NCBI GenBank assembly: GCA_965644265.1
Contig: OZ286468.1
Location: 76,074,001 to 76,138,000, forward strand
Direction: 5' to 3'
Origin: Glycera tridactyla
Taxonomy: Eukaryota
Length of the DNA stretch: 64,000 bases
The notes beneath the pieces were generated by a model. The model ran no database searches, was not told where the DNA came from, and saw only the letters and a program-made list of their open reading frames with translations. The position numbers and the translations under genes are program-made. Shown here piece after piece: positions 267-61,658 of this stretch (position 1 is the first letter of the stretch; each line of letters opens with the position of its first letter).

Positions 267-267
<1 letters not shown>

Positions 268-298
<31 letters not shown>

Positions 299-8369: not shown

Positions 8370-8401
<32 letters not shown>

Positions 8402-16464: not shown

Positions 16465-16496
<32 letters not shown>

Positions 16497-33100: not shown

Positions 33101-35821
33101 GACTCTGAGTCAGCGATAGTATGCAAAGACTGCAATAAGCTTTGTTATTGTTCATATTGCTATGAGGAACACAAGCGTCTTCGTGGTAAGAAGAAGTCGT
33201 ATTCTATGTGTTCCAGGTCGTGGTTGTGTCCGCTCTGTAGCAGGACAGTTAACACAAAAACGAGGTCCAAGACCGATCACAAGTGTGGTGAGCACTTTTG
33301 CAGGAGGTGTTCCAGACACGTAGTTGGACGTCATCAGTGTTATATAAGACCTATTAAATCTAAAAGAAAGGGTGTTGTGAGCAAGAACGATATTTCGATG
33401 TATATTGCTTTCGACATCGAAACATGTCAAGATGACCTGTTCCAATGCTGTGAGGGTTACACTCCGCCTGAAAGATGTCAACTATGTCGTGAGCATTAGC
33501 TGCCGTGTGGAAAGTGTTTGAAATGTATGAAGTGCGGAAGTGCGAAGTGTGGAAGCTATGTGCACCAGGCGAATTTAGTTGTTGCTGAAAAATGGTGCAA
33601 GTATTGTCAGTCGATTACATTCTCGGATTCCGAATTCTGCACTCATTGTGGTGACAGGTGTGCCAAGTGCAGGGTTAGGAAGAGGAGTGGTAGTGGACTG
33701 CACGATTACAGGTCGCCATTTTGCAGTAACGGCAAGTGTGGAAGGAGGAGACTTTTTTTTTGGAATGTCTTGCTTGGGTGAATTTTGCGAGTGGATGTGT
33801 GCGGTAGCTCATTCTTATGCTACCGTTGTCAGTCACAACGGTAGCAGATTCGATCAGTATTTTGTGTTACATCAGCTACTGCAGTCACAGGTGAAGTTAC
33901 ATAAAGTAGTAGTAAACGGCGGCCAGCTACTTTTTGTGAAAGTTGGTCATCAGATACGAATCGTGGGGAATTTTTATCTGTTCCTTTGGCGAAATTACCG
34001 TCAATGTTCGAATTAACGTCGGAAATTGATGGTGAATTGTCCAAGGGGTATTTTCCTCATCTGTTCAACACGGTTGCCCGCTCTCAGGAGGGATATGAAG
34101 GGGAGTATCCATCGGAGGAAAGCTACAGTGTGGAATCTATGAAGCCGGGTCAGGTTGACATATTCCGGCAGTGGCTCGCGGACAAGCGTCAGAGCGGCCA
34201 TCTGTTCAACCTGAAGCGGGAGTTGGTTGCATACTGCACCAACGACACGACGATATTGCGTAAAGCTGTGATATCGTTTGACAAAGTGATATATGATTTG
34301 GCTGGTTTGCACCCCTTCCGAGAGTGCTTCATGATAGCCTCATTGGCCATGAAAATTTTCAGGAAAATATATATCACTGAGATGTTAACATGTACTGTTC
34401 GAGATAGGGATACTTCATCTGTCACCGAAGTTGGGGCGGTCAGACGAGATGGCATGTTGAAAATTGACAAAGGAAACGAGATGGTTCCAATTGCTGTTTT
34501 TCCAAATTTGGAGGTTGTGAAAGAGAAATTTGAACGAAGTTTTCTTGGAATAACTCCCCATTGTGGCTATCGAACCCAGGCAAAATTATTCAGTCGAAAG
34601 GCCTGCGCTTGGATGGAGTATGTCTCCCAGAAAGATGATATTTATATACTGCATGCCGGAAATAAGCAAGAGGTTTCCATCAGACGTTTTGACGGCAAGC
34701 TGTTCCATGTTGATGGATACTTTCCTGGGGCGGGTAACCCTGAACCGGACGTGAATGAGAGTGTGAGTGACGTTCCTGCAACTGCAGTCGTTTATAATTT
34801 TTTTGGCTGCTTGTGGCACGCTTGTGAGGAGTGTTATCCATCTGGTCGTGGCGACGTTCGATGCAAGAAGACAGGAAAAACGTTTAATGAGATGTATGCT
34901 TCTTCTCAGATCTATTTGAATGAATTGGCGACAGTCTGCTTGAATGTTGTAACTATTTGGGAGCATGAGTTTGATGATCTGATTGAGAACGATGAAGAAG
35001 CTGGTCGAATATATCGAACACTGGAAATCGATGAACCTCTAGATCCTCGCGATGCTTTTATGGGTGGCCGCGTGGAGAGTGTGAGATTACTGTGGTCGAA
35101 AGAAAAGGCTATCGATGGGGAGAGGGTGTCGTATTCTGACTTTTGTAGTTTGTATCCATTTGTGCAAAAGACTAAACCATTCCCCTGTTTTCATCCGGAA
35201 ATTAGGACCAGAAATTTTGGAAGCATAAGTAGTGTTGTGATAGCTGCGTTCGTGACTGGGTATGGGAGACACGAATTGCTGCAGGAGATGGAGCAGATTG
35301 GTGAGTCGCTCCTGTATACAGACACAGATAGTTTGATGTATGCATCGACCGACGGACAGTACGCTCCATCTCATGGGTGCTTTTTGGGTGACTTGACGCC
35401 GGAGATTCCTGAGGGCACTTCAATTGAAGAGTTTGTATGCACAGGCTCAAAAAGCTATGCTTACAAGCTATCCAATAAGGAGACTGTTCTCAAGTACAAA
35501 GGGTTCTCTGTGAGTCATGCTGCAGACAAGATACTGAATTTCGACTCTATGAAGCGGATGACTGAGTCGTATTTGGCAGGTGAACGCGGTCCCGACGGTG
35601 TTGTGGAGGTACCTCAAAGACAGATAAGGAGGGACAAAAAATCATTATCGATTATGACAGATAGAAATTTTAGTAAGAAATATCAGTTCACGGTAGATAA
35701 AAGAGTGGTGCTGCCAGATGGCTCGACTATCCCGTTCGGGTATAGAGGCAAGGATCTCGGTAAGATCAGGATAAGGGAGCAGGGGTGTGAAGATGAAATG
35801 GTAGACAAGGGTTCAAATTAA
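30141..35821 (+). pseudogene. polB: Protein-primed family B DNA polymerase with long spliced N-terminal extension; disrupted
   Basis: Present: N-terminal Polinton motif (NDNRLCLMRAI), Cys/His zinc clusters, ExoI FDIET, ExoII HNGSRFD, KGYFPHLFN, ExoIII YCTNDT, Vsr-like insertion (VDGY...GCLWHAC...IWEHEF), FMGGRVE, motif A DFCSLYP and motif C YTDTDS. Lesions: frameshifts at ~32210, ~33100, ~33760 and ~33990, stop at 33497-33499, and motif B region missing. Confidence 0.93.
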
Positions 35822-38824: not shown

Positions 38825-39110
38825 TTACACGCATGGGGGGGCCACGTCACACTCACACACATAAATGTTATAACTTGTGCCCCCCCCCATTCGTTCGGAT
38901 GTTACTGTCACGAACCACAAACACAACACTGAGATTCTCTCTTACGAGATATTCATTGGCCCACTCATCACGTCCTCTATTACATGCATGGGGGGGGACC
39001 CGGATGTCTCTCTCACACTGATGCTACAACTTGTGCCCCCCCCCCCCCCATTCATTCGGATGCTACTGTCACGCACCACAATCACAACAAGAGGATTCTC
39101 TCTTGCCGTA
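38825..39110. repeat. ~155-bp tandem duplication with poly-G/poly-C runs; related unit at ~57880-57945
   Basis: GCATGGGGGGG...ACTTGTGC(C)nATTC.TTCGGATG.TACTGTCACG.ACCACAA occurs twice. (C)n...CGGACGTTACTCTCACGCACCACAAACAC lies just right of the Gypsy. Confidence 0.8.
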
Positions 39111-39335
39111 CATCGTCGTCGCGACGTGAGGTAGCCATTGTCCCACCACACCCGCTAGCGGAGCCCCCCCCCCCCGTCCGATCCATCAATCGCACAAGGT
39201 GGTCATTATCACATCGCACGGCGGATGGAGCATCCAATCATATAACCCACTCACGGATTCGATCGGCAATTCGTTTTATAGAACTCGTCGTCTAATCACA
39301 TGTACATCGATCATTCTTTTAAATTGTATTTCTTG

Positions 39336-42300
39336 TGTAATCCTTCCAATATGACAATGGAATTAAACCAGTCATCCGACAGGCTTGTAGGAGTATTCCC
39401 TCCTCTTCCTTAAGATGCAACCTTGGCAAGAAGTTTATATCTGATTAAATTACCATTATCAAGAACAGCAGGAAGCAATGTATAGGTTAACCGGGCTTTT
39501 ACCCCATTTATCCCAATGTCAAAATAAATGGCATTGCTCCTGTGGATCGATGTTCACAAAAATATATACGTTGTACTAAAAGATGTTAAAATGCGCGATC
39601 AGTATTACATGTTGAATCCCATTGTTTGCCAGCTCTAATGAAACCATAAATCTATAAAGACATCTCATCTATCACACAGGGAACTCAATTGTTGGTTCAA
39701 AAGTATAAGATGACACATAAATAGAGTTGTAGATACATATTTTAATTTGTATAAAGTTCACATAGTAGGTAGGTTGTAAATGATAGATCATAATTTGAAT
39801 GAAGCAATATAGATTATCACAGTATCAAGTAGACAAAAAGTCAGTTATACTCATGATGAAATAAATAAATTCATTTCAAATATTCAGATCTGAATTATAT
39901 ACATATATGACAAATATGGATGAACTCGTGTTACATAAATACCAGTGATACATCAGAATTATTCAACTCACGACATACTCATACACAGGATATTCATGGC
40001 CGAATGACAAAGTGAGGTACCTCAATGAGTTATACAAGTACACACTCAAATAGTCACAAGATTGAGCTCAAACCCTTTTATAGTACTATCTTCTTTCTTG
40101 TTCCATCGTTGACTTGGGCGCTTGAGAAGTGGCCACTGCAGCTAGCTAGAAATATAAACAAAGTCAGAGACACTGTGTCTAGATAGTTAGTGCACTTTAG
40201 ATATATGACTTTAAAAGTTTGGGTTAAAGACCCACGATGCAAGATCGACTTTAAAAGTTAATATAGTGGTGGCCACCTAGTTGCACATGTGATGACGAAC
40301 TTTGGTTATATATCCATATCAGCTAGAGAATGATGGTAGCTGATACTAGAACGTGTATCATAGATGGAAGTAGAAGTAAAGAGGAGACATCATTCCTCTC
40401 GAGTGAAGTAGCTTATCTCGTAAAGATAGCTAACAGCATCTCACCGTGTGAAGAGATTATGTCCTACACATTTCCCATGTGTATAGTGCGTTTAACACAC
40501 TAAAGAATATGTAGACGACGACTAGGCATATCCGCCTATATTAGTAGATTCCCATAAGCCCGGGAGGCGACGTGGGAATGGAGTGGCCTGAAGAGTACGC
40601 ACCTCTTCAATTTACGACATCTCAGACGCGTTGGTCGCTGCAAGAAGATAAAAAAAAGTCTCCTACCAACTTGTCCAAGTATCATAAAGAAAAGTTTTAA
40701 TTCAAAAAGTATCTTTAAACAACTCTAAGTTTTTATTTATGTTTGTTGCGTGCACTTAGTTACTTGCAGTTGCCAGATCTATTATAGTGGGAAAGCAGGA
40801 TCCCACTCTATTCCCCACTAACTAAATAGCATAAGAATTTAACTTACAAGTTACCATTGATCAAGTTACTAGAAATATTTCAACATTCAGTTGAAGAGAT
40901 TGTCAAAAGACAATCAGCAAGTATCACCGTTGAAAAGAAATCTCAATGCACTTAAGCCATTATCAACGGAGCAGGCACTGAGCCAACTAAGTTAATCTAT
41001 CAATGAACAAGGCATTAAAATATCATCAGCTGTATCAGAGAGAGCTAAGTTCACGGGAAAATGAACTAGAAAGGTGAACACACCAAGTCCTCTCTCAGTC
41101 AGCTGGGATCATGATGCAGCAGCAATACAGCGAAAAAGTTGAAGTCCAACTGTCTGCATGAAAAGAGCAAGCACGCTTTTCAAAATCAAAAATAGTTAAG
41201 TCCTCATCAAATCAAATTCAAAAATTTGAATAAATTCTAAATTAAGAATCCGAGATAGAGAAATCAATCTATTCAGAACAGGTGGTCTTTGTAGACAGTA
41301 TCAGATAGAGTCACCACTCACCGAAGCAAGAGGCAAGATCTGAAATCAACCCAAGTTCCCCCTCCCTTACACTGCGAGTATGACCTACCTAACATAGACC
41401 GGAACGCACTAAGTCACAGCTGCAACAGCAGCGGGGTCTAAGTTCCGATCTACCAAGTCCGTGCTAAGTTCGAATTCTAAAATTCACCAAATCCCAATTT
41501 CAACTCCTTTCAAGCCATTTGGTAATGTCTAAAGTCGAAATTAGTCATGTAATTCCAGAAATATAAGAGCGAAATGCATTTACATGCAGTCCCATATGTC
41601 ACAAACCTCAAACACAAATGTGCTTACTAGGTAAGACCATGAGTAAGTCCGGTAAGCACCGTGCTGAGTTTCAGTCAACGCGCTAAGTTCGCGCTGTCAA
41701 ATCACAAATAGCGCTAAAGCCAGCACACTGAAGTTCTATAAAAGCAATCCGCACATAACGAGAAACAATTCCGATCAATTCTAAAGCATCTAAAAGCTTT
41801 TATCCAAAAGTGAAAAAGTTTCAAACTTGTTGAAAAGTGTAAAGTGGATCGGAAGCTCAAAGTGAGGCTCATACATGTGGCGGATGGAAATCCAAAATGG
41901 CGGATTGTTTACATCTGACCGATCAGTCAGAAACAGCTGTTCATTCCAGAACGCTCAGAAAGTATCTCGGAGCTCAAATGACAGCGCATAGCAGCTTATT
42001 CATTACGAGAGCTAAACAATTACCAATATAGCCGTTTGAAGGTCTAAAATCAATCCAAAAGAATTTTCCTTCGAAAATACAGCCTAACGTGATGTCGCAG
42101 ATCATATAGACCAAAAATCTCAAGGTGGTCACATGTGACAGGTTGGTCTCAATACGGAGGTTCCCTAAAAAAAGTAGGTCACGGGATTTAGGGACATCAC
42201 ACAAGACTAAGCAAGCTTAGGACGGGTCCGTGCTTAGGATATACAGCGCTTAGGACAGAAATCAAGCTTATCAGAGTGGACCTTCTCCGAAAAAGTCTAA

Positions 42301-44508
42301 ATTCAGGCCGGGCACATGAATCACAAGCAGACACTACGTGTAAACAAAACAAGCCTCGGTTTGTCGTCTCCCCTACATGTCTATTACAAGTACGAGCACC
42401 AAAAACATTCCACCGGATCTTCAATTGACAAATACGACAGTTGTGGTCATAGAAATTGAAATACCATCAAACTAGCACTTGATCGTTTATAAACAAGCTT
42501 TTTGCAAGCCGAAATAAATTCAGAAAACTGAAATTGAAGCATATTTGATCGGTCAATTAATCGATTAATCGATCGGTTAACCGTCAAAGAATTCCAGATT
42601 TTCACACCATATGAACGACATTAGATTATTACCTTCTCAAAACAAGCCGTTTCAATGAAAATACGTTTTTCAATAAAGAATTTCACTCGGAAAAGAAAAG
42701 ATTGACTGGATCTCTATTCATATGATCAGGGAGCTAAAGAAAACAGATCAGCTGTGTGTGCTATTTACGAAACCAGCAGCAGAGTTCACCTTAGCGGTGA
42801 CCTGGTTAGTACACATGACAGCGAGCTGCCATTGTCATACCGAGATAGGCATGTTCATTTCAACTCAGCCCACATGGACTGGTAGAGTAGCCGGGTCTAA
42901 AAACACACAGATTCAGAGAGAAAAGACACAGTCGTCTCTGCTGATATTTCAACTGAAAATGATCTTACAGAAATATTCCTTTCACAATATTATTCCTATA
43001 GAGAAATCCCGTGAATATAATTGAATTTTGAATGATTCAATCATCTAATTCACACAGAAATCCGATATATTACACAAATGATCAGAATCTGATCGGTAGG
43101 AGCTATATTGAGACGTGTTAGCAGTTCATACACACAGCTTCTCTCACCCGGAGGATTCAGTGAGTCCAAGCGTTAAATACTATATTACAAATTCCTGCAT
43201 AGCCCTGTTCCACCCAAACAGGCGTACTGCACCGGGAACAACGCAGGAGGAACACGGCATAGTTCCACGCAGTTCCACTTGTTCCAAAATCACCGGAACA
43301 GCACAGGGAATTAACAGAAACAGATAGAACTACCAATATCCGCGAGAATTATCAGCTAGTTGTTTGGATCAGGACGGCATTTATGGAACAAAATCCTATC
43401 ATCCAAAATGATCCAAAATCATCCAAAAACATGCAAATTCTAGATTTTGACCACGTATGCTCGAAAGATGGTACATTCAATACAAAACACGGAAGATCCG
43501 ATGACATGAAATGGCATGATACTAAAAATGGCCATTTGGGCAATTGGGGAAAATGACTCCTAATAAAGCCTCCTAAAAGGATCCTAAAACATTTCTAAAT
43601 CTCATGAACACTTACTGGATGTAGTAGAGCTCAGGATGATGTAGTGGAGTCCATTGTTTCTATTCCAGTGCAGCGATACTGGAGAAGCAAGATGTTCTCT
43701 GCTCCCGACTCCCTCAGCTCCGGTGCGTACTCTTCAGGACAGAATTTCCAAGTGCCAGAACTCCTGTCTGGAATACTTTTATGTATCCGTCCTGAAGAGC
43801 CAGCAAAGAGCGGGAAAAAAGAGCGGGAGAAGCGATGTCAAGCTCCCCGAGTCAGCTACCTCGAAAGTATTCGCTCGAGACTTTTCTAGATCAATTACAG
43901 AAGATTTTCTGAGAAAACATGTACATTGCATGTACATTGCAGATCACTTTCCTCCTGCGCGACTCCGAGCTCCTCCTGCTCAGGGAGTCATTCACTATAC
44001 TGTGTGATCAACTATGTTGGCAAAAAACCGTCCGATAAACGGCCTATCCCACGGACTAACAAATTTGCCTCAAAAGATACAATTCCCATCTTCGGGATAT
44101 CTTTAGCCCTAATACAGATACGTATCGTGTAAAAATATGGTCTTCCTACGTCCATTATTCATGAAGATATCGCATTTCTACTGTTTCACCCTAGAAACAC
44201 TGCAAGCTGGGCACCCACCGCGAACGGCGATTCCACTGCGTGTAACTCGAACTCTAGTTGCCACACCAACAACCAGATAGGTGAAACAACGAATATTAGA
44301 AAACTAACAGGATTTCTACTGTTTTTCAACTAATAGAAGTGAAACTATCTCATGCTTCTGAAGTAGGAAGGAATAATTATCAATCTAGTAGCGTAAAAAT
44401 AGTGCCGCGGGCCTCAAAAGAGGAATTCCGCGAATTCCGCTACCAGAAATCCCTATATTGTTCATGTTATTCTAACAAACGTCACATGTTCAAAAACGTG
44501 GCGTTACA
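39336..44508 (-). repeat. 3' LTR (5173 bp)
   Basis: Colinear with 52681-57853 at a constant offset of 13345; nine substitutions found by eye. Confidence 0.97.
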
Positions 44509-44732
44509 TGCTCCCGGGGGTATAAATGTTTGTGCTGCAACCAAACATTGCGAAACCAAACAAGACAAAAATATGTGTCCCACACTTATTGCCTATAACA
44601 TTAACAAGAACAATATATGGAACACAACCCTATTCTCAAAAATAAATCTTACCATCTAAAAACTTATCTTCAAAAATAATAATATAACTAATTCAAGGTC
44701 CTTTCCCAAGCAGAATTTTGGATCTACTGGAG

Positions 44733-45472
44733 CACTTGTATCCTTCGGGCTCTAAAGGAGCGCACCCTAGGCTAGATACCTTTCCAGCTTAGTAGCCGAC
44801 TAAGCCCTCCCTGCTTCTCAGAGACTACTTTTCATAATCTCCGATCACAGAGAGCACAGCTCGCAAAAGCTAACTGTGGCCTGACTGTACATTGAGCCAT
44901 CTTGAGAACAAAACCGGAAACTCAAGATGACCGGCTGGTGACCCAGTCGATAGCGATCAGGACATCTTGGTCACCCAAGAGCCCAACCGACGGTCTGATC
45001 CACTGTGGGTTCATGCCACCCGATGTTAGCTGAGCAGTAAACTTTGACCGTTTTCACCAGCCTTGCCTGTCACATACATACAGAACTAAAACTATAATGT
45101 ATGCGAGGTGTAGGTCGTCACCTACGTACCACACACAACCACTTATCAACATCGCAGATCATTTCTCGGGCATAGAAAAAGTTATCAAATGACAATACCA
45201 TAACTATACTTTAGTAGGTAAGTCATGGACTCCTTTTACATGTCATTTGAAGTGAAACCATTTTCCAGCAAAACAACCTACAACATCAACAGATCGGCCA
45301 ATGTGTCGACTAGACGGTACCACAGTACTATGTTAATACACAGTTCGTTAGACACGTGGGCCTTCAGTTTCTCCCAAGCACTATATCCACAAGTTTAACG
45401 TGCCCCCGGATCCTCACGGATCCACTGCCGCCTGTTCTAGGCACTCCTATAAGGAGCCTATCCCTCTTGAGT
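44733..45472 (-). ncRNA. Group I-like self-splicing intron A (740 nt, no ORF) in the retrotransposon 3' UTR
   Basis: Boundaries CUAGGU|ACUC...CAAGUG|CUCC. Guide GCCUAG (+ strand 45437-45442) pairs with the exon hexamer with a terminal U-G. Covarying hairpins and a P4/P6/P7-like core are shared with copy B. Confidence 0.75.
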
Positions 45473-47876
45473 ACCTAGGTGGAAAGCTTATTTACAATTC
45501 CATGAGAAGCAAAGGATCCTAAACCTCCAGAATAGGTCCCGCTGATCTAGTTTGTCTGTCTCCTTTCAACAGCCAGGAGATATATCCACCGTATCTATCT
45601 GGAGGTTTTCTCACCCTTTCCGGTTTTCTACGGGCGATTCCAGGTGGTGAAGCATTCACTACTTCAGTCTCTTCAGACAATGGTGAATCTGACGCAGAAT
45701 GATATTCTGTGTCAGGATTCAGATCAGACTCAGTATCTTCGTCATGAGCGTCAATCTCATCAGAATTCTCAAGAAGAGGATTTTGGGCCTCTTCAATATC
45801 AATTCCAGCTTCCACAACACTGGTTTCTGACTGAGATCTAGCTGGGGTGGACTCTAAATCCTCACCTAAATGTTGGTCTACATTTGGCTGAATTTGTCCT
45901 GGTTCAGCATGTTCAGGATGATCGGATTCAATTTGAGCTGTTGGAGACAAATCACTAGCAGATGGAGTTGTTACCACTACATATTCTTCGTCCTCAAATG
46001 AATCAGAATCACAGCCCTCAGAGCTATCTTCCAATTGACCTTTTTGTTCTGAAGCACGGGTTCGGTATCGAGATTTTTGGCCAGGTTGTATAACTGTACC
46101 AGCATCTTTACTCACCGTGTCTTCAGCAAAGAGCTGAACTATATCCTCACTTATACCCTTTTCATCTAGAACCACATGAGTTTTCAAATATTTTCTATCA
46201 AAATCTTCAATAGATTTTAACATATCAATATGTAAAACTCTGTGAGGTTTTCTTGGCCTAGACAAATTCTTTAACTCATATACTCTGTTCTCGTTATCTG
46301 CCAATCTTACGACTTCATAAACTTCGGGCAACCAGGTTGGGGCTAGCTTGTGCATCCCTTTGATACCAACGTTCTTAACAAGAACTTTGTCACCAACTTT
46401 GAGTATACACGATTTAACTTTTTCATCATATCTATACTTGTTAGACATGTGAGAAAAGTCTTGACTCTGGCTAGCAATGGTTTGGACAAATTCCAACCTA
46501 GACTTCAAAGCTTCTACGTATTGTTTGAGATTATCATATTTCCTATCCTCAGGATAAGTTCCTAACATGACATCTACTGGTAGACGACTCTTCCTTCCAA
46601 ATATAAGTTCGAAAGGTGAGAACTTGGTGGAGGAGTGGATTGAGCTATTATATATGTTGGTTAAATGCCCTAAATATTTACTCCAAGAGCAAATTTTCTG
46701 TGTGGACATTGTGCCAACCATGTCAATCAAGGTACGATTGAATCTTTCGCAAATGGCATCACTCCTAGGTGAATACGGGCAAGTAAACACCTTTTTGATA
46801 CCAAGTAAATGACAAAGTTGGTCAATTACTTGCGATTCAAAATTTCTGCCTCTGTCAGATAAGAGCTTTTCAGGCAAGCCAAAGATGTCAAAAACTTTCT
46901 CTACCAGAGCTTTAGCGACCGTGGTGGCGGTCTCATTCTTGGTGGGTATAGCAAAAGCATATTTGCTAAACACATCAGTTACAATCAACACATGGCCAAA
47001 TCCATGTTTATCCATATCCAAGGATAGATAATCCATGGATAGGACTTGGAAAGGTCGTTGAGCTGCAACTTCACCTAACATGCCTTGTTTAGAGGGAGAA
47101 GTCTTTTTCAATAGACACTCTTTGCAAGCAGAGATATATTCTGTGATAGCTTTAACATGTCCAGAAAGATAAAATCTTCTCTGGAAAAATTTGACTACCC
47201 TCTCTACTCCAAAATGGCTCATCATTCAGAGCATGTAAAACTTGGGGCAAACACTTGTGGGGCAAAATAATCAAAAGGTATTCAAATCCTTCGATTTCAG
47301 TTCTTTTGCACAATACCCCTTCTGAATTAAAAACTAACCTATCTCGGAAGTAGAAAAGCTTCCTATATTTCTTTGGAAAGTCTTTAGGCTTACAAGGTCG
47401 CCGTTTGTACATGTATTGAATCACTAGATTCAAATCAGAGTCCTTGAGTTGTTCAGTTCTCCAGTCAAAAGACTGGGAGTCACTTGAGACACCAAAACTT
47501 GACGCGTCTAAATTACCTACATTTACATTTTCAATCAATGGAGTGGTTTCTGAAGACAGCTCCGAAGAGTGCTCAACCACTTGATCAGGTGTCTCATGTA
47601 GTCTAGACAATACATCAGCGTCGACATTGACCGGTCCAGGCTTGTAATGTATGGTGAAATCATAGTCTCCAAGGGCAGCAAGCCATCTCTGAGATGTAGC
47701 ATCAACCTTGAGAGATCTATGTATATACGTGAGAGGGTTATTATCAGTGTATACCTTAAATGGGTGGCCATATAAATAAAAGTTAAATTTATCGACTACA
47801 GCCCACTTGAGCCCAAGAAACTCAAGTTTGTATACAGGATAATTTTTCTCAGTATCTTTAAGAGATCTAGAAGCAT

Positions 47877-48657
47877 CACTTGTATCCTTCGGGCTCTTCC
47901 AAAAAAGCGCACCCTAGGCTGGATACCTCTCCGACCTAGCGGCCCATCCAAGGACGCCAACTAGGCCCTCTCTGCTTCCCAAAGACTACTTTTCATAGCC
48001 TCGATCACAGAGAGCACAGCTCGCACAATTGCTTACTGTGGCCTGACTGTACATTGAGCCATCTTGAGCATCAAAGTCTTCAAGATGACCGGCTGGTGAC
48101 CCAGTCGATAGCGATCAGGACATCTTGGTCACCCAAGAGCCCAACCGACGGTCTGATCCACTGTGGGTTCATGCCACCCAATGGAAACTGAGCAGTGAAC
48201 TTTGACCGTTTTCACCAGCCTTGCCTGTCACATACACCTTACCAAAATTGGACTCATAGAGTTCAAGGATGCATGCTAGGTGTGGACGGTAATCCACGTA
48301 CCACATGTGACCACTTATCTCAGTAGACTAACCAATACCATCCGTGAGCAAGTTATCAGACGCAATACCAATAACTAGACTGCAAAAATCTTAATTCACA
48401 GCCAGCCTGGACCAATTTTACATGCCATCTGAATAAGCCAACCTTACTCACGGAGGACAGTCTACCCAACGGACAGCCCGATCAACATGCCGACTAGACG
48501 GTACCAGAGTACTGTGTCAATTCACAGTTCGTAAGACACGGGGATCTTCAGTATCATCCCAGCACTATATCCTGGAGTTTAACGTGCCCCTAGACCTTTG
48601 CAGGTCCACTCCCGCCTGTTTTTGCCACCCTTTATGAGGAGCCTATCCCTCTTCAGT
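47877..48657 (-). ncRNA. Group I-like self-splicing intron B (781 nt, no ORF) in the RNase H coding region
   Basis: Boundaries UUUGCU|ACUG...CAAGUG|AUGC. Removal restores TGC TAT GCT TCT AGA (C-Y-A-S-R). Guide GGCAAA (+ strand 48621-48626) pairs with the exon hexamer with a terminal U-G. Confidence 0.8.
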
Positions 48658-50811
48658 AGCAAACAGGATGCAACAGATTCTTGTCACCAAATTGCAACAA
48701 AACAGCCCCCAGTCCTGTGGTACAAGCATCTACATGCAAAATAAAAGGTTTCTCTAAATCTGGGAATGCTAACACCGGGGGATGGGTGAGTAGTTCAATC
48801 AGCTTCTCACGAGCTTCTTGACATTCCTCGTCCCAATCTTCTACCACAGAGTGCTGTAAAGCAGGCTGTTTCACAGGAGGTCCAAACTTACTTTTGGGCT
48901 TATACTTGACCCCTTTTAAAAGACGTAACAAAGGTTGAGCTATACTGCTATAGTGAGGGATATGCCTCCTAAAAAATCCAGCAAATCCTAAGAAACTCAT
49001 GACATCTTTTACTGTTCTGATAACAGGCCAATCCTGTAAAACTTTAGTTTTTTCAGGATTGCACATCACACCTTTATCAGAGATGATATAGCCAAGATAA
49101 ACTATCTCCTGGGACGCCAAGGTACACTTGCCAGGGTGTATCTTGAGACCAGCTTCACGCATAAGAGTGAGAGCTCTGGACAAAAGTTCCAGATGTTCCT
49201 CCATAGTGCGGCTAAAAATAATGACATCATCAAGAAAACAAATACATCCCTCATAAAGCATTGGTCTGAGGATGTTCTCCATGCAACGTTGAAAAGTTGC
49301 AGCAGAAGTCTTAGCCCCCTGAACCATGCGATTGTATTCATACAATCCAAAAGGTGTAGAGAAAGCAGTCTTCTCTTTATCCCTCTCCTCGATTTCGATA
49401 TTATAGTACCCGGATCTTATATCCATTTTGGTAAAAAAAGTATTACCAGCCAGGTAGGGTAAAATATCGTCAAAACGAGGGAGAGCATAACAGTCCCTCA
49501 CTGTTTTATCATTGAGATGTCTTAAATCAGTCACCATCCTAACTCTCCCATCTGGTTTTTGCAAAAAAATAGGAGCACTAGAATAAGGAGACACTGAAGG
49601 TCGTATGATACCTTTCTCCAGTAACTGATTTAAATGATCTTTAGCAGCAGCATACATCTTTGGAGGTAGATTTCTGTGTCTGACCTTAAACGGAATATCG
49701 TCTGACAAATTGTACCCATGTTTCACACCCTCTACTTTTCCAATATCATAGTCTGACTTAGAGAAAGTAGCTAGATTATCTTGAAGACAAGCTTCAAGAC
49801 TTTCCTTCTCTAGATCAGACAAATGGGATAAACTATCTACATGGTCCCACAGAAGTTTAATATCAGGTGATATTTCTTCTTCCTCATCCTCTCCTAGTGT
49901 AGTTTTAAACTGGTCGACATCGTCAACCCCCTCAAACTCAGAAAGGTTTAGTCGAGTAGCATGCACTCTGACATCATCCGAGGCTAATTCAAAAGGTATA
50001 GTTGAAAGTGATACTACACCAAAATCATTTCCTTTGCAGACAGTATAAACAGTAGAAGAAGTATTATGTACAGGCACATGAACTGTTGACAAGGAAGCTA
50101 AATTAGCATCAAGCACAACTGGAGTCTTCATCAAAAAGTCATTGTTTGGTTCAATCAAAATTGCCGCATTTATGCCTACTAATTTAGATCGAAATTTTAA
50201 TTTAACAATTGATGTTTGACCTGGAAGAATGGATATATCTTGTGCCACTTTGGCACTACCCAAAAATCCGTTTGAAATGCTTTCAGCTTGTTGAACCTTG
50301 ACGAAAGAATTATATACAACATCTAAAATAGAACTATGTGACGGATGTTGGCAGTTATTTAAATACCAGAATTTCTCAATGGCATTCATGCCTACAAGAC
50401 ACATATGGTTCTGAAAAGTGAAATCAAAACCACAATTGTCTTTCAGCACTAAAAATAATACATGTGTGCCTTCATTAGTTCCGGACAATCTCTTGCCCAT
50501 TGTCACAAAAAGTTCCACAGCTCCAACATATTGTAGGGCTTCCCCATTAACTTGATTCACTCTCAACAATGAAGACACAGGTTGTAGCGGAACATAAGAA
50601 AAATATTTCCGATACAGTCCTTCATTTATGAGTGAAACTTGACTTCCAGTGTCAATTAATGAAGAAATAACAGCTCCATTCAATAAAATGTTATGAATGT
50701 TTTGCTTGCCAACTAAAAACGGTGGTAGAGTAAATAAGCTTGAAACATGTACATCAATGGGTGGACCAGCATCATCTCCGGAGAAAGAATGGTCCAGTTC
50801 TTTCTCTGGGA

Positions 50812-52215
50812 TTAGTTTCCCTGCTGATTCTGAGAGGCTAAATAAGCTGCTCGTTGCTGACGCATGCGAGAAAACATCTTGCTTTCATCCCAATCTATAG
50901 AACAAGTCTTAGCTACATGGCCTTTCTCCCCACAATTATAACATATAGCTTTCTCTAACCATTTAGGTTTCCACTAGGGTTTCACACCATCATGTGAAAA
51001 CAGAGGTTTCTCAGTGGCAGCACTAGCTGCAGCTACGACTGGAGTTTTGCCAGATAGTTGTAAACTCTTCGGGTTCTGAACTACTTGGTCTATCTGACCG
51101 GACAATTTCTTAGAAGCAGATCTAATGTCATACAAAATGTCACTATGTACAGGAGTAGATTTGATGGAAGGGTTGGAAATGGCTAAAGCAGCTAAACTAG
51201 TTTCTTCCTCAACAGAATTAACATAATCTAAAAAAGATAGGTTAATTGAAGAAACAGAAGCTGTCTTCTTGTTTCTCATACACCTCCTCTTGCGCTCCTT
51301 ACTTTCCCTCTCAAAAGCTTGCAACTGAGTACTAAAATCTTGGTACCCAGGATATTTGTCAAGGTCTTTGAGTTTGAACTCAGAAGTGATCATAAAGTGA
51401 TCAGTGGACTGTAACCCTCTAAGAAAATAATGTATTAGAGACTGGTTCACATCAGCAAAATACTTAGGATCTACTCTCACCATTTCTGATATAATATCAT
51501 CTATCCTAGACAAGAAATCAGATGGAGATTCAGTGACTTCCTGAATACAGTCCATCAGCCTATCGACTAGATGGGAAATACTGTCTGAAGCACCATAAGT
51601 GATCGCTATCTTATTCACTAAGGCAGCACTGGTCTCTATTGCCCTAGCAGCTCTCAAAGCTTTCCCTGTTAAACTGAGTCGCAATGTTTTCAGTTTCTCC
51701 TTCTCGGAAATATCGGCATCGTTCATGACATGTTCATTGGCCAACAACAGCCATTCTTCCACCGTACATTCCCCAGAGCCAGGTTTGTCCCTACCCGAGA
51801 ACTTCTTCAAACCTCAATAATGAGCAGTAGCTTCAGGTTTGGGTGATCGTGGTGTTGTGGGTGCAGGTGGTGTCTGAACAATGGTAGTTGAAATGATTGC
51901 ATCCTTTCGAAGCTGTTCGACAAAAGAGACATGATAAGCATCATTTCCTAGAATGATACAATCATTGTCATCTAACACGTCACAATTCTTATCGAAGGCT
52001 ACATGATCTCGCGAGTGGATCAACAAACAATTGCAAGGTTCAGCCACAGTGTCATAGATAAGAAAAAGGTCAAAATCTACGAATATAGTCCCTACCAACT
52101 TGGTGGTAGCAGCTTTCCAATCTGGATCAGCAGCTACAGGCACTGGGTACCTTTCAATCACCATGCAATAATAAGGGGGAATATTCAACCTTTTGCAAGC
52201 CACGTCAGGATCCAT
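50812..52215 (-). pseudogene. gag: gag (PNMA-like capsid with C-terminal CCHC zinc knuckle), two in-frame stops
   Basis: One frame from 52215 to TAA at 50812. It contains Y*GLKKFSG (TGA at 51814-51816), EEWL...EKEKLKTLRLSLTGKAL, TAG at 50974-50976, then CYNCGEKGHVAKTC. Confidence 0.92.
50815..50821 (-). promoter_or_regulatory. -1 ribosomal frameshift slippery site G GGA AAC at the gag-pol junction
   Basis: An X XXY YYZ heptamer sits immediately before the gag TAA. The -1 frame is open (GKLIPEKELD...) into the protease LIDTGSQVS. Confidence 0.85.
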
Positions 52216-52660
52216 GTTGACGTTGCAAGATATATGGCACTACCCTAAATAGAGAATATAAATTCACAAAAAGAAAAGGGTATTAATTCTGTGTAAAGTA
52301 AAATGATTAATACATATGCAACACTCAGGCTAAATTCCGTATCTGAAACAAAGTTTTGGATTAATCTGGTATAAACCAGTGGCACCAAATCGCACTATTA
52401 ATACAGAATAAGTTGACACATACCAATTCAGCCAGTCCAGTATAGCATACAAGTCATCACTACTCAAATCCAGATAAAGATATAATGCATATAGAAGATG
52501 TAAATGAATAGATTAATACATGTCTGTAAACAAAAACATGCATCTACAAGTCATACAATTGTACCACAAATAAGACCACTGTATGATATAGTGAGATGAA
52601 ATTTGATCAATTAAATTTCAAAAACATCATGGCTGGGCAAATCAGACATCAACAAATCTG

Positions 52661-52678
52661 ATCCCGGACGAGCCCCCA
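52661..52678 (-). promoter_or_regulatory. Primer-binding site for tRNA-Pro
   Basis: The - strand reads TGGGGGCTCGTCCGGGAT, the 18-nt complement of the tRNA-Pro 3' end (same as the MuLV PBS), 2 nt from the LTR. Confidence 0.95.
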
Positions 52679-52680
52679 TG

Positions 52681-55600
52681 TGTAATCCTTCCAATATGAC
52701 AATGGAATTAAACCAGTCATCCGACAGGCTTGTAGGAGTATTCCCTCCTCTTCCTTAAGATGCAACCTTGGCAAGAAGTTTATATCTGATTAAATTACCA
52801 TTATCAAGAACAGCAGGAAGCAATGTATAGGTTAACCGGGCTTTTACCCCATTTATCCCAATGTCAAAATGAATGGCATTGCTCCTGTGGATCGATGTTC
52901 ACAAAAATATATACGTTGTACTAAAAGATGTTAAAATGCGCGATCAGTATTACATGTTGAATCCCATTGTTTGCCAGCTCTAATGAAACCATAAATCTAT
53001 AAAGACATCTCATCTATCACACAGGGAACTCAATTGTTGGTTCAAAAGTATAAGATGACACATAAATAGAGTTGTAGATACATATTTTAATTTGTATAAA
53101 GTTCACATAGTAGGTAGGTTGTAAATGATAGATCATAATTTGAATGAAGCAATATAGATTATCACAGTATCAAGTAGACAAAAAGTCAGTTATACTCATG
53201 ATGAAATAAATAAATTCATTTCAAATATTCAGATCTGAATCATATACATATATGACAAATATGGATGAACTCGTGTTACATAAATACCAGTGATACATCA
53301 GAATTATTCAACTCACGACATACTCATACACAGGATATTCATGGCCGAATGACAAAGTGAGGTACCTCAATGAGTTATACAAGTACACACTCAAATAGTC
53401 ACAAGATTGAGCTCAAACCCTTTTATAGTACTATCTTCTTTCTTGTTCCATCGTTGACTTGGGCGCTTGAGAAGTGGCCACTGCAGCTAGCTAGAAATAT
53501 AAACAAAGTCAAAGACACTGTGTCTAGATAGTTAGTGCACTTTAGATATATGACTTTAAAAGTTTGGGTTAAAGACCCACGATGCAAGATCGACTTTAAA
53601 AGTTAATATAGTGGTGGCCACCTAGTTGCACATGCGATGACGAACTTTGGTTATATATCCATATCAGCTAGAGAATGATGGTAGCTGATACTAGAACGTG
53701 TATCATAGATGGAAGTAGAAGTAAAGAGGAGACATCATTCCTCTCGAGTGAAGTAGCTTATCTCGTAAAGATAGCTAACAGCATCTCACCGTGTGAAGAG
53801 ATTATGTCCTACACATTTCCCATGTGTATAGTGCGTTTAACACACTAAAGAATATGTAGACGACGACTAGGCATATCCGCCTATATTAGTAGATTCCCAT
53901 AAGCCCGGGAGGCGACGTGGGAATGGAGTGGCCTGAAGAGTACGCACCTCTTCAATTTACGACATCTCAGACGCGTTGGTCGCTGCAAGAAGATAAAAAA
54001 AAGTCTCCTACCAACTTGTCCAAGTATCATAAAGAAAAGTTTTAATTCAAAAAGTATCTTTAAACAACTCTAAGTTTTTATTTATGTTTGTTGCGTGCAC
54101 TTAGTTACTTGCAGTTGCCAGATCTATTATAGTGGGAAAGCAGGATCCCACTCTATTCCCCACTAACTAAATAGCATAAGAATTTAACTTACAAGTTACC
54201 ATTGATCAAGTTACTAGAAATATTTCAACATTCAGTTGAAGAGATTGTCAAAAGACAATCAGCAAGTATCACCGTTGAAAAGAAATCTCAATGCACTTAA
54301 GCCATTATCAACGGAGCAGGCACTGAGCCAACTAAGTTAATCTATCAATGAACAAGGCATTAAAATATCATCAGCTGTATCAGAGAGAGCTAAGTTCACG
54401 GGAAAATGAACTAGAAAGGTGAACACACCAAGTCCTCTCTCAGTCAGCTGGGATCATGATGCAGCAGCAATACAGCGAAAAAGTTGAAGTCCAACTGTCT
54501 GCATGAAAAGAGCAAGCACGCTTTTCAAAATCAAAAATAGTTAAGTCCTCATCAAATCAAATTCAAAAATTTGAATAAATTCTAAATTAAGAATCCGAGA
54601 TAGAGAAATCAATCTATTCAGAACAGGTGGTCTTTGTAGACAGTATCAGATAGAGTCACCACTCACCGAAGCAAGAGGCAAGATCTGAAATCAACCCAAG
54701 TTCCCCCTCCCTTACACTGCGAGTATGACCTACCTAACATAGACCGGAACGCACTAAGTCACAGCTGCAACAGCAGCGGGGTCTAAGTTCCGATCTACCA
54801 AGTCCGTGCTAAGTTCGAATTCTAAAATTCACCAAATCCCAATTTCAACTCCTTTCAAGCCATTTGGTAATGTCTAAAGTCGAAATTAGTCATGTAATTC
54901 CAGAAATATAAGAGCGAAATGCATTTACATGCAGTCCCATATGTCACAAACCTCAAACACAAATGTGCTTACTAGGTAAGACCATGAGTAAGTCCGGTAA
55001 GCACCGTGCTGAGTTTCAGTCAACGCGCTAAGTTCGCGCTGTCAAATCACAAATAGCGCTAAAGCCAGCACACTGAAGTTCTATAAAAGCAATCCGCACA
55101 TAACGAGAAACAATTCCGATCAATTCTAAAGCATCTAAAAGCTTTTATCCAAAAGTGAAAAAGTTTCAAACTTGTTGAAAAGTGTAAAGTGGATCGGAAG
55201 CTCAAAGTGAGGCTCATACATGTGGCGGATGGAAATCCAAAATGGCGGATTGTTTACATCTGACCGATCAGTCAGAAACAGCTGTTCATTCCAGAACGCT
55301 CAGAAAGTATCTCGGAGCTCAAATGACAGCGCATAGCAGCTTATTCATTACGAGAGCTATACAATTACAAATATAGCCGTTTGAAGGTCTAAAATCAATC
55401 CAAAAGAATTTTCCTTCGAAAATACAGCCTAACGTGATGTCGCAGATCATATAGACCAAAAATCTCAAGGTGGTCACATGTGACAGGTTGGTCTCAATAC
55501 GGAGGTTCCCTAAAAAAAGTAGGTCACGGGATTTAGGGACATCACACAAGACTAAGCAAGCTTAGGACGGGTCCGTGCTTAGGATATACAGCGCTTAGGA

Positions 55601-57853
55601 CAGAAATCAAGCTTATCAGAGTGGACCTTCTCCGAAAAAGTCTAAATTCAGGCCGGGCACATGAATCACAAGCAGACACTACGTGTAAACAAAACAAGCC
55701 TCGGTTTGTCGTCTCCCCTACATGTCTATTACAAGTACGAGCACCAAAAACATTCCACCGGATCTTCAATTGACAAATACGACAGTTGTGGTCATAGAAA
55801 TTGAAATACCATCAAACTAGCACTTGATCGTTTATAAACAAGCTTTTTGCAAGCCGAAATAAATTCAGAAAACTGAAATTGAAGCATATTTGATCGGTCG
55901 ATTAATCGATTAATCGATCGGTTAACCGTCAAAGAATTCCAGATTTTCACACCATATGAACGACGTTAGATTATTACCTTCTCAAAACAAGCCGTTTCAA
56001 TGAAAATACGTTTTTCAATAAAGAATTTCACTCGGAAAAGAAAAGATTGACTGGATCTCTATTCATATGATCAGGGAGCTAAAGAAAACAGATCAGCTGT
56101 GTGTGCTATTTACGAAACCAGCAGCAGAGTTCACCTTAGCGGTGACCTGGTTAGTACACATGACAGCGAGCTGCCATTGTCATACCGAGATAGGCATGTT
56201 CATTTCAACTCAGCCCACATGGACTGGTAGAGTAGCCGGGTCTAAAAACACACAGATTCAGAGAGAAAAGACACAGTCGTCTCTGCTGATATTTCAACTG
56301 AAAATGATCTTACAGAAATATTCCTTTCACAATATTATTCCTATAGAGAAATCCCGTGAATATAATTGAATTTTGAATGATTCAATCATCTAATTCACAC
56401 AGAAATCCGATATATTACACAAATGATCAGAATCTGATCGGTAGGAGCTATATTGAGACGTGTTAGCAGTTCATACACACAGCTTCTCTCACCCGGAGGA
56501 TTCAGTGAGTCCAAGCGTTAAATACTATATTACAAATTCCTGCATAGCCCTGTTCCACCCAAACAGGCGTACTGCACCGGGAACAACGCAGGAGGAACAC
56601 GGCATAGTTCCACGCAGTTCCACTTGTTCCAAAATCACCGGAACAGCACAGGGAATTAACAGAAACAGATAGAACTACCAATATCCGCGAGAATTATCAG
56701 CTAGTTGTTTGGATCAGGACGGCATTTATGGAACAAAATCCTATCATCCAAAATGATCCAAAATCATCCAAAAACATGCAAATTCTAGATTTTGACCACG
56801 TATGCTCGAAAGATGGTACATTCAATACAAAACACGGAAGATCCGATGACATGAAATGGCATGATACTAAAAATGGCCATTTGGGCAATTGGGGAAAATG
56901 ACTCCTAATAAAGCCTCCTAAAAGGATCCTAAAACATTTCTAAATCTCATGAACACTTACTGGATGTAGTAGAGCTCAGGATGATGTAGTGGAGTCCATT
57001 GTTTCTATTCCAGTGCAGCGATACTGGAGAAGCAAGATGTTCTCTGCTCCCGACTCCCTCAGCTCCGGTGCGTACTCTTCAGGACAGAATTTCCAAGTGC
57101 CAGAACTCCTGTCTGGAATACTTTTATGTATCCGTCCTGAAGAGCCAGCAAAGAGCGGGAAAAAAGAGCGGGAGAAGCGATGTCAAGCTCCCCGAGTCAG
57201 CTACCTCGAAAGTATTCGCTCGAGACTTTTCTAGATCAATTACAGAAGATTTTCTGAGAAAACATGTACATTGCATGTACATTGCAGATCACTTTCCTCC
57301 TGCGCGACTCCGAGCTCCTCCTGCTCAGGGAGTCATTCACTATACTGTGTGATCAACTATGTTGGCAAAAAACCGTCCGATAAACGGCCTATCCCACGGA
57401 CTAACAAATTTGCCTCAAAAGATACAATTCCCATCTTCGGGATATCTTTAGCCCTAATACAGATACGTATCGTGTAAAAATATGGTCTTCCTACGTCCAT
57501 TATTCATGAAGATATCGCATTTCTACTGTTTCACCCTAGAAACACTGCAAGCTGGGCACCCACCGCGAACGGCGATTCCACTGCGTGTAACTCGAACTCT
57601 AGTTGCCACACCAACAACCAGATAGGTGAAACAACGAATATTAGAAAACTAACAGGATTTCTACTGTTTTTCAACTAATAGAAGTGAAACTATCTCATGC
57701 TTCTGAAGTAGGAAGGAATAATTATCAATCTAGTAGCGTAAAAATAGTGCCGCGGGCCTCAAAAGAGGAATTCCGCGAATTCCGCTACCAGAAATCCCTA
57801 TATTGTTCATGTTATTCTAACAAACGTCGCATGTTCAAAAACGTGGCGTTACA
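52681..57853 (-). repeat. 5' LTR (5173 bp)
   Basis: Followed on the - strand by CA and then the PBS. Confidence 0.97.
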
Positions 57854-59074
57854 CTTGCGCAACACAGATCAATGTTATGAGAGACCAACCCCCCCCCCCC
57901 CCCTTTAAACCGGACGTTACTCTCACGCACCACAAACACTAGGGTCCCCCCCCCTGATCAATATTCGCGGTAATGGAGTCGACGAGATGCGGTATCACAA
58001 GCTGACCGCTTACGCGAGCAACGTGATTAGCGACAAATTGCGTGTTAACCCGATCCCCACCCATATTGCGGAACCTGCCGTTTATTTATGTTTTATTCAT
58101 ACGCATATACTCGCATTCCGGCCGCCGTTGTAGGGTTTCTATTTCTGCGCATATTACTCATGTCGCGCGAAGGACAACCGCCGCCTCATATCCCATGCGT
58201 ATTCACATCCCGGTCGTCCGAATATTTTATATCTCATATATATCGCAAGCGTGCAAAGGACGGTCGACGCCGTACATATCCATACGCCCGCTTTCTGATC
58301 GGCGTCCGTAGCTGTTTTTTTTTGCTTATGTTTATATTCATATCTCACAAGCGAGAGAGAAACGAGCGGCAATGTCGCTCCGACAGGGAGACCTTTTCCA
58401 CGAAGGCCCAAATTCTGTGCCTGCACCGCGTCCTCCGCGAGGCGAGGCGAGAGTGCGTCCCAGGACATCCAAAGGGGGCCGACGGAAGTCGTATCGCGGC
58501 AAGACGAGCCGAAGCCCAGATTTGGTGCCTGTATCGTGTCCTATTGCGAGGAGCCTCCACGAGGGGGCGAACCCAATCTAGAGCGCTGTATCATTATTGG
58601 ACGGCATCGTATTATATCGCCGTATTATATATATATAACGATTGAACGGTCGATGAATATCTAATGTCCTCTCGACACCGAATCGGTCATTCCGGACACG
58701 TATATATATATATGTGTAAACAGACCATCGTCTTGTTATCGCGAAGAAAGGAGGCGGGAAGAAGAAGGCCGCAATCGATAGCCGTCCGTCCGACCACCGG
58801 ACAGGGACAGCGCTTGATCGAATGTACGACGGGAGAATAGTCCGCTGCGGAGGACACGCTGAAAGCCGTGATGAAAGTTGTCGACGCGCGACAGCTACGA
58901 CCTCTCAGGGGGATAATCTGGAATCCGCGATGCGAGAGTCGTCCGCGAGGGCGGACACGAAGAAGAAGGAGGAGGACACTCCGGTCGGTTTGCGGCGGGC
59001 GCCTTGCGCCGACGTCCGGATCCGGACGCCGGGGCGCCCCCCCTTCCGGCCCGGGGGGATGCACCCAATCCTTT

Positions 59075-59544
59075 CTACAGCCCCCGCACCACGGACATCG
59101 CCGATCGGACGTCTTCCAGCGCCCCGAGGTCCCGTCCCTCCAGCCGGAGGACCAGGAAGGCGAGGCAGTAGTCGCCGCAGAACCCGTTCGCCCCCTCGGC
59201 GGCGGCGGCCGAGAGGGGAACGGGACCTCCAGGCGGTCGCAGTTCGCGCGGGCAAATTGCTCCAGCTCGGCGTCGCCGTAGTCGCCGGGCCGGAGTCCGG
59301 CCAGGTCGAAGAACCGGCCAGCCCCCGTCCCGGCGGGAAACAGGAAGCAGACCCAGTGACCTCCCCTCCTGACGGCGGACCGGTTGACGTTCACCACGTA
59401 CGCCGCCGGTCGATCGCCCGGTCTCAGCGCGGGCAGGAGCCGGAGCTCGTCGCGGGCCGCGACGACCCCGGTCCTCAGCCGCTCGGCGAAGGGTGGCGAC
59501 GATGACAGGACCCCCCTGATCTGGCCGGATGAACAGTAGCACAT
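59075..59544 (-). pseudogene. Adenain-like cysteine protease (Polinton PRO), frameshifted at ~59195
   Basis: AYVVN...GGHWV (His) and FFD (Asp) lie in one frame; FCGDYC (Cys) lies in the adjacent frame. Confidence 0.85.
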
Positions 59545-59955
59545 TTTTTTTTTCTTCCCCGCTGACAAATATATATATATATATACCGCTAATCACAAAC
59601 ACAAGCTATACGTAAATAATGCCTCCCCCCCTCCCCCTCGGCCGGCGATGCCGGCCGCGTCTCCGACCCGCACCGATCCCCGTTTTCCCTCCAGCCCGAT
59701 CCGTATGCCGGTAACAAACACTAGGTGCTGACAACAATAGTGATTCCGCCGCTAAAGAAAAAAAAAGCACAATCAGTATACAGGTAACACTCAGCCCCCC
59801 CCACCCGGCAACAAATACCCGCAAACAGCGGCGACGATGACAATATTATATAAGCATAAAATATGCAGTCCAACAACTGGGCGGGTGCGTCCCCGGACGC
59901 CGGGAAGCGTGACGCTAGTCCGGATAAATGCAATAACTGGCGGGGAAACGTGACG

Positions 59956-61308: not shown

Positions 61309-61317
61309 GCTGCTTCA

Positions 61318-61650: not shown

Positions 61651-61658
61651 GATAATGT

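Follow-up and report, generated by a model that had tools for sequence, protein, structure and literature searches.

Two inserts of 740-780 bases within a single LTR retrotransposon belong to a large family of ORF-less introns with a group I ribozyme-like core, whose six-base guide in most copies matches the retroelement RNA in which each copy is located. The inserts were identified in a 64,000-nucleotide stretch of DNA, hereafter the window. Our literature searches found no prior report of such introns in nuclear protein-coding or retroelement genes. We consider the family to be real and probably a new lifestyle of group I introns (a probability of roughly 0.75), although splicing itself, spread by reverse splicing and the animal host are inferred.

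The two inserts and their host element

The host is a Ty3/gypsy-like LTR retroelement at window positions 39334-57853 on the minus strand, with an internal region at 44509-52678. Its two direct repeats are 5175 bp long, 99.83% identical and run TG..CA, and a PBS-like TGGGGGCTCGTCCGGGAT lies next to the 5' LTR. Pfam searches identified gag (PNMA), RVT_1, RNase H and integrase. No matching TSD flanks the element. Both inserts are on the minus strand, which is the sense strand of the host. Intron A (44733-45472, 740 nt) is located between the pol stop codon (45519) and the 3' LTR (44508), and was delimited by alignment with B and with 16 other full-length copies. Intron B (47877-48657, 781 nt) is located inside the RNase H domain of pol, exactly between two consecutive codons. 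The upstream pol piece ends at RT_RNaseH profile position 35/105 and the downstream piece starts at 36/105, while related elements read straight through this site, with HPVCY followed directly by ASRSL.

Inserts A and B are 75.6% identical overall and are the only copies in the window. The LTRs, by contrast, are 99.83% identical, so both introns predate this integration. A 100-nt block (44922-45021 in A, 48080-48179 in B) is exactly identical, with a mismatch on each side. Of 212 predicted pairs, 18 changed on both sides between A and B. No flanking direct repeat is longer than 1 nt, and no stop-free run inside either insert exceeds 83 codons.

In sense orientation, A is preceded by CUAGGU, begins with ACUCAAG, ends with ACAAGUG and is followed by CUCCAG. 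B is preceded by UUUGCU, begins with ACUGAAG, ends with ACAAGUG and is followed by AUGCUU. The guide of A, GCCUAG (45437-45442), pairs 6/6 with its 5' exon target CUAGGU (45473-45478), and the AGU preceding the guide pairs with the first bases of the intron, ACU, extending P1. The guide of B, GGCAAA (48621-48626), pairs 6/6 with its 5' exon target UUUGCU (48658-48663), closing in U.G at the junction.

Additional copies and guide matching

A 22-base core motif found at least 120 more copies in metagenome contigs, and one more copy turned up in a related element. Family members range from 580 to 990 nt. A scan of viral contigs gave no matches. A scan of genome contigs with a 17-mer gave 55 matches, about the number estimated by hand for chance (roughly 70). 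Only one of these loci carries a second family motif, which we also take for chance, so none looks like a family member.

Among 22 copies with distinct guides, 16 pair 6/6 and 5 pair 5/6 with the last six bases of their own 5' flank. The null rate for 6/6 is 1.7%, and none of 20000 permutations reached 16. The splice-site pair is U.G in 19 of 22, while three copies lack it. All six exon-guide pairs change on both sides, with a covariation score of 0.538 against 0.19 for shuffles (0 of 500 shuffles were as high), and the helix continues 3-4 bp into the intron with covariation. The guide is hypervariable, being only 37.5% identical in intron pairs that are at least 85% identical elsewhere. All 18 full-length copies end in G after a covarying terminal helix, although some SINE-borne copies have lost the terminal G. 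The longest repeat flanking 18 copies is 1-2 nt. The exact 5' boundary of one copy, L003, is ambiguous by one base.

Hosts, orientation and empty sites

In 15 of 15 loci with a pol match, pol is on the strand of the intron, and of 36 long flanking ORFs 31 are in sense. The flanking ORFs are Ty3/gypsy gag, PR, RT, RNase H and IN; named pol homologues are mostly animal but distant. The reading frame is compatible across the boundaries in 6 of 7 testable copies, the exception being copy L079.

One subfamily is embedded in a SINE-like retroposon. The intron-bearing SINE has its own 10-14 bp TSDs at many loci and a (TG)n tail, so intron-containing RNA was retroposed repeatedly. About 20 intron-less copies of this SINE show the exact junction, in which GCAGA(U/C) is followed directly by UUGCAUAUGG, although this presence/absence pattern cannot tell gain from loss. 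The RNase H site of B is likewise empty in related elements, yet no near-identical intron-less copies of the LTR-type hosts were found in the loci retrieved.

Predicted structure of the conserved core

The conserved core folds in the canonical group I order, P3, J3/4, P4, J4/5, P5, P4', P6, J6/7, P7, J7/3, P3', P8, J8/7, P7' and P9, with typical junction lengths and including the P3/P7 pseudoknot. In A, the 5' strand of P3 GGCUGGUGA, J3/4 and the 5' strand of P4 (ACGGUC) are located at 45046-45062 (48204-48220 in B). The 3' strand of P4 (GACCGU), P6 with its extension, J6/7, the 5' strand of P7 (U[C]GACUG) and the 3' strand of P3 UCACCAGCC follow at 44933-44995 (48091-48153 in B). The P8 hairpin (GGUCAUCUUGAG/CUCAAGAUGGCU), J8/7 CAAUGUA and the 3' strand of P7 (CAGUCA) are located at 44882-44932 (48044-48090 in B). 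The 3'-terminal helix (GUAUCU with GGAUAC) and the AAGUG tail, ending in the terminal G at 44733, occupy 44733-44779 (47877-47926 in B).

Of note, RNAalifold itself recovers P3, P4, P5, P6, P8 and P9 and leaves GACUG and CAGUC free to form P7. Across the family 140 pairs are 93.5% canonical and 72 change on both sides, while slid controls give about 40% canonical and 19-42 pairs. On the antisense strand the structure is only 77.4% canonical. The core helices are 95-100% canonical, and P5, P6, P8 and P9 covary. However, P3, P4 and most of P7 are nearly invariant and carry almost no covariation, which is partly an ascertainment effect because the search motif covered P3 and P4. The outer pair of P7 switches from U-A to C-G across a bulged base in L003 and another copy, L101, where the arrangement is C[A]GACUG / CAGUCG. 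The layout and the P7 and J8/7 motifs match the Rfam RF00028 consensus, in which P7 reads aAGACUA / UAGUCu; for the guanosine-binding site this is evidence at the sequence level only. No consistent P10 pairing with the 3' exon was seen by eye in about 10 copies; P10 is optional (PMC3679873).

Rfam scans of the window, the insert region, 8 other copies and a 641-nt stretch gave no group I, group II or small-ribozyme family. RF00028 gave no hit even at E<=10 on the 641-nt stretch. The same model, however, scores the phage T4 introns td and nrdB at 40.3 and 35.7 bits, below its own 50-bit cut-off.

Interpretation and alternatives

The sequence-only reading had proposed that A and B are retargeted group I-like introns that could spread by reverse splicing into the element RNA and be fixed by the reverse transcriptase of the element. 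It is supported, as every sequence-level prediction that could be tested came out as expected. One detail needs correcting, since the hosts are not only this LTR element but several Ty3/gypsy lineages and a SINE-like retroposon. We infer that the RNA excises itself by the two-step guanosine-initiated group I reaction, so spliced transcripts can still encode pol, and that unspliced transcripts are reverse-transcribed and carry the intron to new loci. New sites would arise when free intron RNA reverse-splices into another retroelement RNA that matches, or nearly matches, its guide, the event then being fixed in DNA by the reverse transcriptase and integration machinery of the host element. Guides would then diversify or be adjusted to their exons. 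P1 of 4-6 nt and a G-C pair in P7 are defining features of group I introns, and reverse splicing followed by reverse transcription is a proposed route (PMC3679873). It is somewhat more likely than not that this is a catalytically active lineage that has colonised the nuclear genome of an animal, probably an annelid, and that continually reprograms its 6-nt guide and so spreads to new sites in protein-coding sequence.

The family could instead represent a self-splicing or host-assisted intron of a new ribozyme class, resembling group I in its guide helix and terminal G but not homologous to it. The absence of an RF00028 match, the unusual presence of about 280 nt of conserved structure before P3 and about 180 nt after P7, and the lack of covariation in P3, P4 and P7 would be in keeping with this. 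We regard it as unlikely, given that the group I order is reproduced with typical junction lengths, that P7 has GACU/AGUC with a one-base bulge and an outer pair, and that RF00028 under-scores bona fide T4 introns.

It is less likely still that the copies are relics of a group I-type intron that once spread this way but no longer splices, now merely riding along in retroelements mobilised in trans. The element in the window does have a frameshift in pol near 47152-47225 and a stop between the two gag ORFs, some SINE copies have lost the terminal G and 5 of 22 guides have one mismatch. However, core motifs are intact in A, B and most copies, structure is kept by compensatory changes, and guides match their flanks and frames are preserved, which decay would erode.

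A DNA-level mobile element that picks its target by base pairing and inserts without a TSD is very unlikely. The lack of a TSD and the ability of the two ends to pair with each other would fit, and a short guide complementary to the flank is probably also how IS200/IS605 ends recognise targets. Yet all identifiable hosts are retroelements hit in the sense orientation, the structure relies on 449 G.U cells valid only in the sense RNA, no transposase ORF is present and a group I-like core is. Helitron and TIR-transposon ends were also rejected, the termini being wrong.

Despite the high copy number and the SINE-embedded subfamily, an ordinary SINE, MITE or spliceosomal introner with a fortuitous guide match is contradicted by the absence of a TSD, tail or TIR on the intron itself, by boundaries that are not GT-AG (those fixed by the reading frame are U before ACU and GUG before A in B, and similar elsewhere), by the significance of the guide match and by the occurrence of the SINE with and without the intron at one exact junction. 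Spliceosomal, tRNA-endonuclease (BHB) and IRE1-type splice sites were considered by eye and rejected, there being no GT-AG and no complementarity of the 5' bases of the intron to the 3' exon.

Comparison with known systems

Nuclear group I introns of rDNA (subgroups IC1 and IE, e.g. Tetrahymena Tth.L1925 and Didymium) share a P1 formed by a 4-6 nt internal guide with the 5' exon, a U.G pair at the splice site, a terminal G and the P3-P9 core with a P7 G-C pair. Many are ORF-less, and reverse splicing has been proposed for their transposition (PMC3679873, PMC1299323). Known nuclear examples all interrupt rRNA genes of eukaryotic microbes (PMC3679873, PMC8395846), while this family is found in retroelement protein-coding and SINE RNAs, occupies dozens of sites with diversified guides at high copy number, has a very large 5' domain and is not detected by RF00028. 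Mobile group II introns select targets by intron-exon pairing and are fixed in DNA through reverse transcription, as is inferred for this family. However, the ends here are ACC/ACU/UGG... and ...AAG(U/C)G rather than GUGYG...AY, domains V/VI and an intron-encoded RT are lacking, no Rfam group II hit was found, and the RT would be borrowed from the host retroelement.

Retrozymes and hammerhead-bearing retroelements (PMC4918200, PMC7229834) are likewise non-coding, ribozyme-bearing passengers dependent on autonomous retroelements, but they carry small self-cleaving ribozymes, make circular RNAs and are elements in their own right, not introns placed precisely inside the genes of other elements. 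Introner elements are also families of near-identical introns multiplying within a nuclear genome, though they appear to be DNA-level insertions with TSDs that are removed by the spliceosome at GT-AG. Engineered Tetrahymena-intron retrotransposition reporters (bioRxiv 10.64898/2026.09.26.754642) place a group I intron inside a retroelement transcript, yet these are artificial and single-site, while the arrangement described here is natural, multi-site and evolving.

Significance

Reviews state that all known nuclear group I introns interrupt rRNA genes of eukaryotic microbes, and that the full route for transposition to new sites, namely reverse splicing, reverse transcription and genomic integration, has never been demonstrated (PMC3679873, PMC8395846). 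This family would be a natural system in which the missing steps are supplied by the host retroelement. The outcome is visible as dozens of sites with matching guides, which makes the reverse-splicing hypothesis directly testable. The family offers a set of naturally reprogrammed guide sequences on one ribozyme scaffold, and it matters for annotation because such inserts make intact-looking retroelement genes appear broken. It would also show ribozyme introns multiplying inside nuclear protein-coding sequence, which bears on how introns can spread.

Two homologous inserts in an LTR retroelement

The host of the inserts is an LTR retroelement on the minus strand, spanning 39334-57853. Its two direct repeats (39334-44508 and 52679-57853) run TG..CA and are unusually long at 5175 bp, and differ at only 9 positions (99.83% identity). 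The 5 bases flanking the element on either side (tttct and cttgc) do not form a TSD. A primer-binding-site-like TGGGGGCTCGTCCGGGAT abuts the 5' repeat, and the internal region encodes a PNMA-like gag, RT, RNase H and integrase. Repeats bounded by runs of G and C (GGGGGGG...CCCCCCCCC) lie just outside both ends of the element, at 38835-39104 and 57895-57958.

Two homologous inserts, A (44733-45472, 740 nt) and B (47877-48657, 781 nt), lie in the sense orientation of the element. They are 75.6% identical and are the only copies in the window. Neither has a long ORF or a flanking duplication. The block 44922-45021 is identical base for base to 48080-48179. Of note, this 100-nt identity includes the P6 extension, which varies across the family, and may reflect gene conversion or template switching between the two introns of one element rather than constraint alone. 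Because the LTRs are nearly identical while A and B share only 75.6% identity, both introns predate this integration.

Insert B splits pol cleanly. The upstream piece ends at position 35/105 of the RT_RNaseH profile (60/100 of RT_RNaseH_2) and the downstream piece begins at position 36/105 (61/100). Two related elements from metagenomes read straight through ...HPVCY/ASRSL..., where the slash marks the insertion site. These results fix the boundaries at U/ACUG...AAGUG/A, which are not spliceosomal. The pol of this copy also changes frame between the RNase H and integrase ORFs (47152-47225), and a stop (51811-51813) separates two gag ORFs, so that the copy is not intact even apart from the introns. 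The pieces were compared separately, without building a joined sequence.

A tandem duplication with an 8103-bp period occupies 1-19428, where 1-11329 matches 8104-19428 at 99.6%, and more diverged partial copies extend to about 23350. An ORF with a protein-primed type B DNA polymerase domain (PF03175), as in Polinton/Maverick elements, is located at 33986-35821 within a stretch of strong GC skew (28-36 kb). A GC-rich block (58000-64000, 55-58% GC) contains a second integrase, which carries a chromodomain (62135-62935).

Additional copies and the variable guide

A third copy, designated L003, was found inside the RT of a related element, again in sense orientation and at a third site. Scans of viral contigs found nothing, and scans of prokaryotic genomes gave only chance-level matches.

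Every copy was anchored on the conserved AACAGGCGG. The six bases just upstream of this anchor differ from copy to copy and are complementary to the six bases of flank that abut the 5' end of the element. Among 22 copies with distinct guides, 16 pair 6/6, 5 pair 5/6 and 1 pairs 4/6. By comparison, pairing a guide with the flank of another copy gives 6/6 in only 1.7% of cases, and 0 of 20000 permutations reach 16. The junction pair is U.G in 19 of 22. On a plain alignment, even with six rows out of register, all six pairs change on both sides, with a covariation score of 0.538 against 0.19 for shuffles and 0 of 500 shuffles as high. The helix runs on for 3-4 bp into the intron with compensatory changes (ACC/GGU, ACU/AGU, UGG/CCA, AAG/CUU, AUCC/GGAU) and is capped by a conserved hairpin. 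The guide is much more variable than the rest of the intron, its identity being 37.5% in pairs that are at least 85% identical elsewhere.

All 18 full-length copies (582-991 nt) end in ...CGAAG-N6-AAG(U/C)G, in which the N6 pairs with an upstream hexamer and the two covary. No copy has a TSD. In 7 copies both flanks are open for at least 40 codons, and in 6 of these the frames are compatible across the boundaries.

Host elements and orientation

In 15 of 15 loci with a pol match, pol is on the strand of the intron. Of 36 flanks with an ORF of at least 150 codons, 31 have it in sense, and these ORFs are Ty3/gypsy gag, protease, RT, RNase H and integrase. In one metagenome contig (L022), an ORF fragment with glycogen-debranching-enzyme domains (1192-1980) lies about 0.9 kb downstream of an intron copy on the same strand, and is a host gene near, or around, a retroelement fragment.

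The largest subfamily (guide GUCUGC) is different. Similarity between its copies stops about 110 nt upstream and about 160 nt downstream of the intron, and that unit is a SINE-like retroposon with its own 10-14 bp TSDs and a (TG)n tail. The retroposon is about 270 nt (head GCCTTCAGTGCTTTGACGCTGTTGG..., tail ...CCGTAAAACGGTTG(TG)n) and is abundant in the metagenome contigs L010-L116, both with and without the intron (e.g. L085:1-2522, L023 and L065:1-80). About 20 intron-less copies occur in the same contigs. In them ...GCAGA(U/C) is followed directly by UUGCAUAUGG..., which is the exact empty site, and so intron-bearing RNA has been retroposed many times. The presence/absence polymorphism is precise to the base. 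Another of these contigs (L106:47-174) contains a near-perfect 128-nt palindromic hairpin that matches several plant miRNA-precursor families below their thresholds and is probably a MITE-like inverted repeat.

Predicted structure of the conserved core

The sense strand folds better than shuffles, with z-scores of -6.3 for A and -3.5 for B against about -3 for both antisense strands. On the 18 full-length copies, a consensus of 140 pairs is 93.5% canonical and 72 pairs change on both sides, while slid controls give about 40% canonical and 19-42 such pairs. The same pairs are only 77.4% canonical on the antisense strand.

Read 5' to 3', the most conserved part consists of GGCUGGUGA (P3), AA(A) (J3/4), ACGGUC (P4), AAA (J4/5), a covarying hairpin (P5), CA (J5/4), GACCGU (P4'), CGGUU...GAUCG (P6, with a covarying extension), CUAU (J6/7), [C]GACUG (P7), GG (J7/3), UCACCRGCC (P3'), a covarying hairpin (P8), CAAUGUA (J8/7), CAGUCA (P7') and a large 3' domain (P9 and beyond). 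RNAalifold finds all the nested helices by itself and leaves GACUG and CAGUC unpaired, as expected for the P3/P7 pseudoknot. The pair outside the bulge in P7 is U-A in most copies and C-G in L003 and in a further copy, L101.

As a reference, Rfam was run on the phage T4 td and nrdB introns. The RF00028 consensus has the same order of elements, with ...aAGACUA... and ...AAGAUAUAGUC... where this family has ...UCGACUG... and ...CAAUGUACAGUC.... However, RF00028 never hits the family itself. In the same analysis the T4 introns reach only 40.3 and 35.7 bits against a 50-bit cut-off, and the model is therefore a weak judge. Although the family is not recognised by this model, we do not take the result as excluding membership.

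Relation to known group I introns

Reviews state that nuclear group I introns are confined to the rDNA of eukaryotic microbes, and that the complete reverse-splicing pathway lacks experimental proof (PMC3679873, PMC8395846). Full-text literature searches found no report of group I-type introns in nuclear retroelements or animal nuclear genes. The sequence-only reading, which proposed retargeted group I-like introns within the LTR element, is supported. One small correction concerns its remark that group I introns in animals are known only from mitochondria of non-bilaterians, as mitochondrial introns are also reported from bilaterians (PMC9240083).

The feature is real, and the family meets the sequence-level definition of a group I intron, with a P1 formed by a guide and U.G, a terminal G, the P3-P9 core and a bulged P7 with a G-C pair (PMC3679873). 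One difference from the nuclear examples in those reviews is residence in retroelements rather than rDNA. Guides may change before a jump, creating a new specificity, or after an imperfect jump, through selection to restore splicing, and the data do not decide between these. While catalysis and reverse splicing are inferred rather than demonstrated, the simplest account of the evidence is RNA-level insertion by reverse splicing, then reverse transcription and integration by the host retroelement, with the intron afterwards hitch-hiking in unspliced copies. Such a route accounts for the exclusive residence in retroelement RNAs, the sense orientation, base-precise boundaries without TSDs, frame preservation, an exact empty site and a hypervariable guide.
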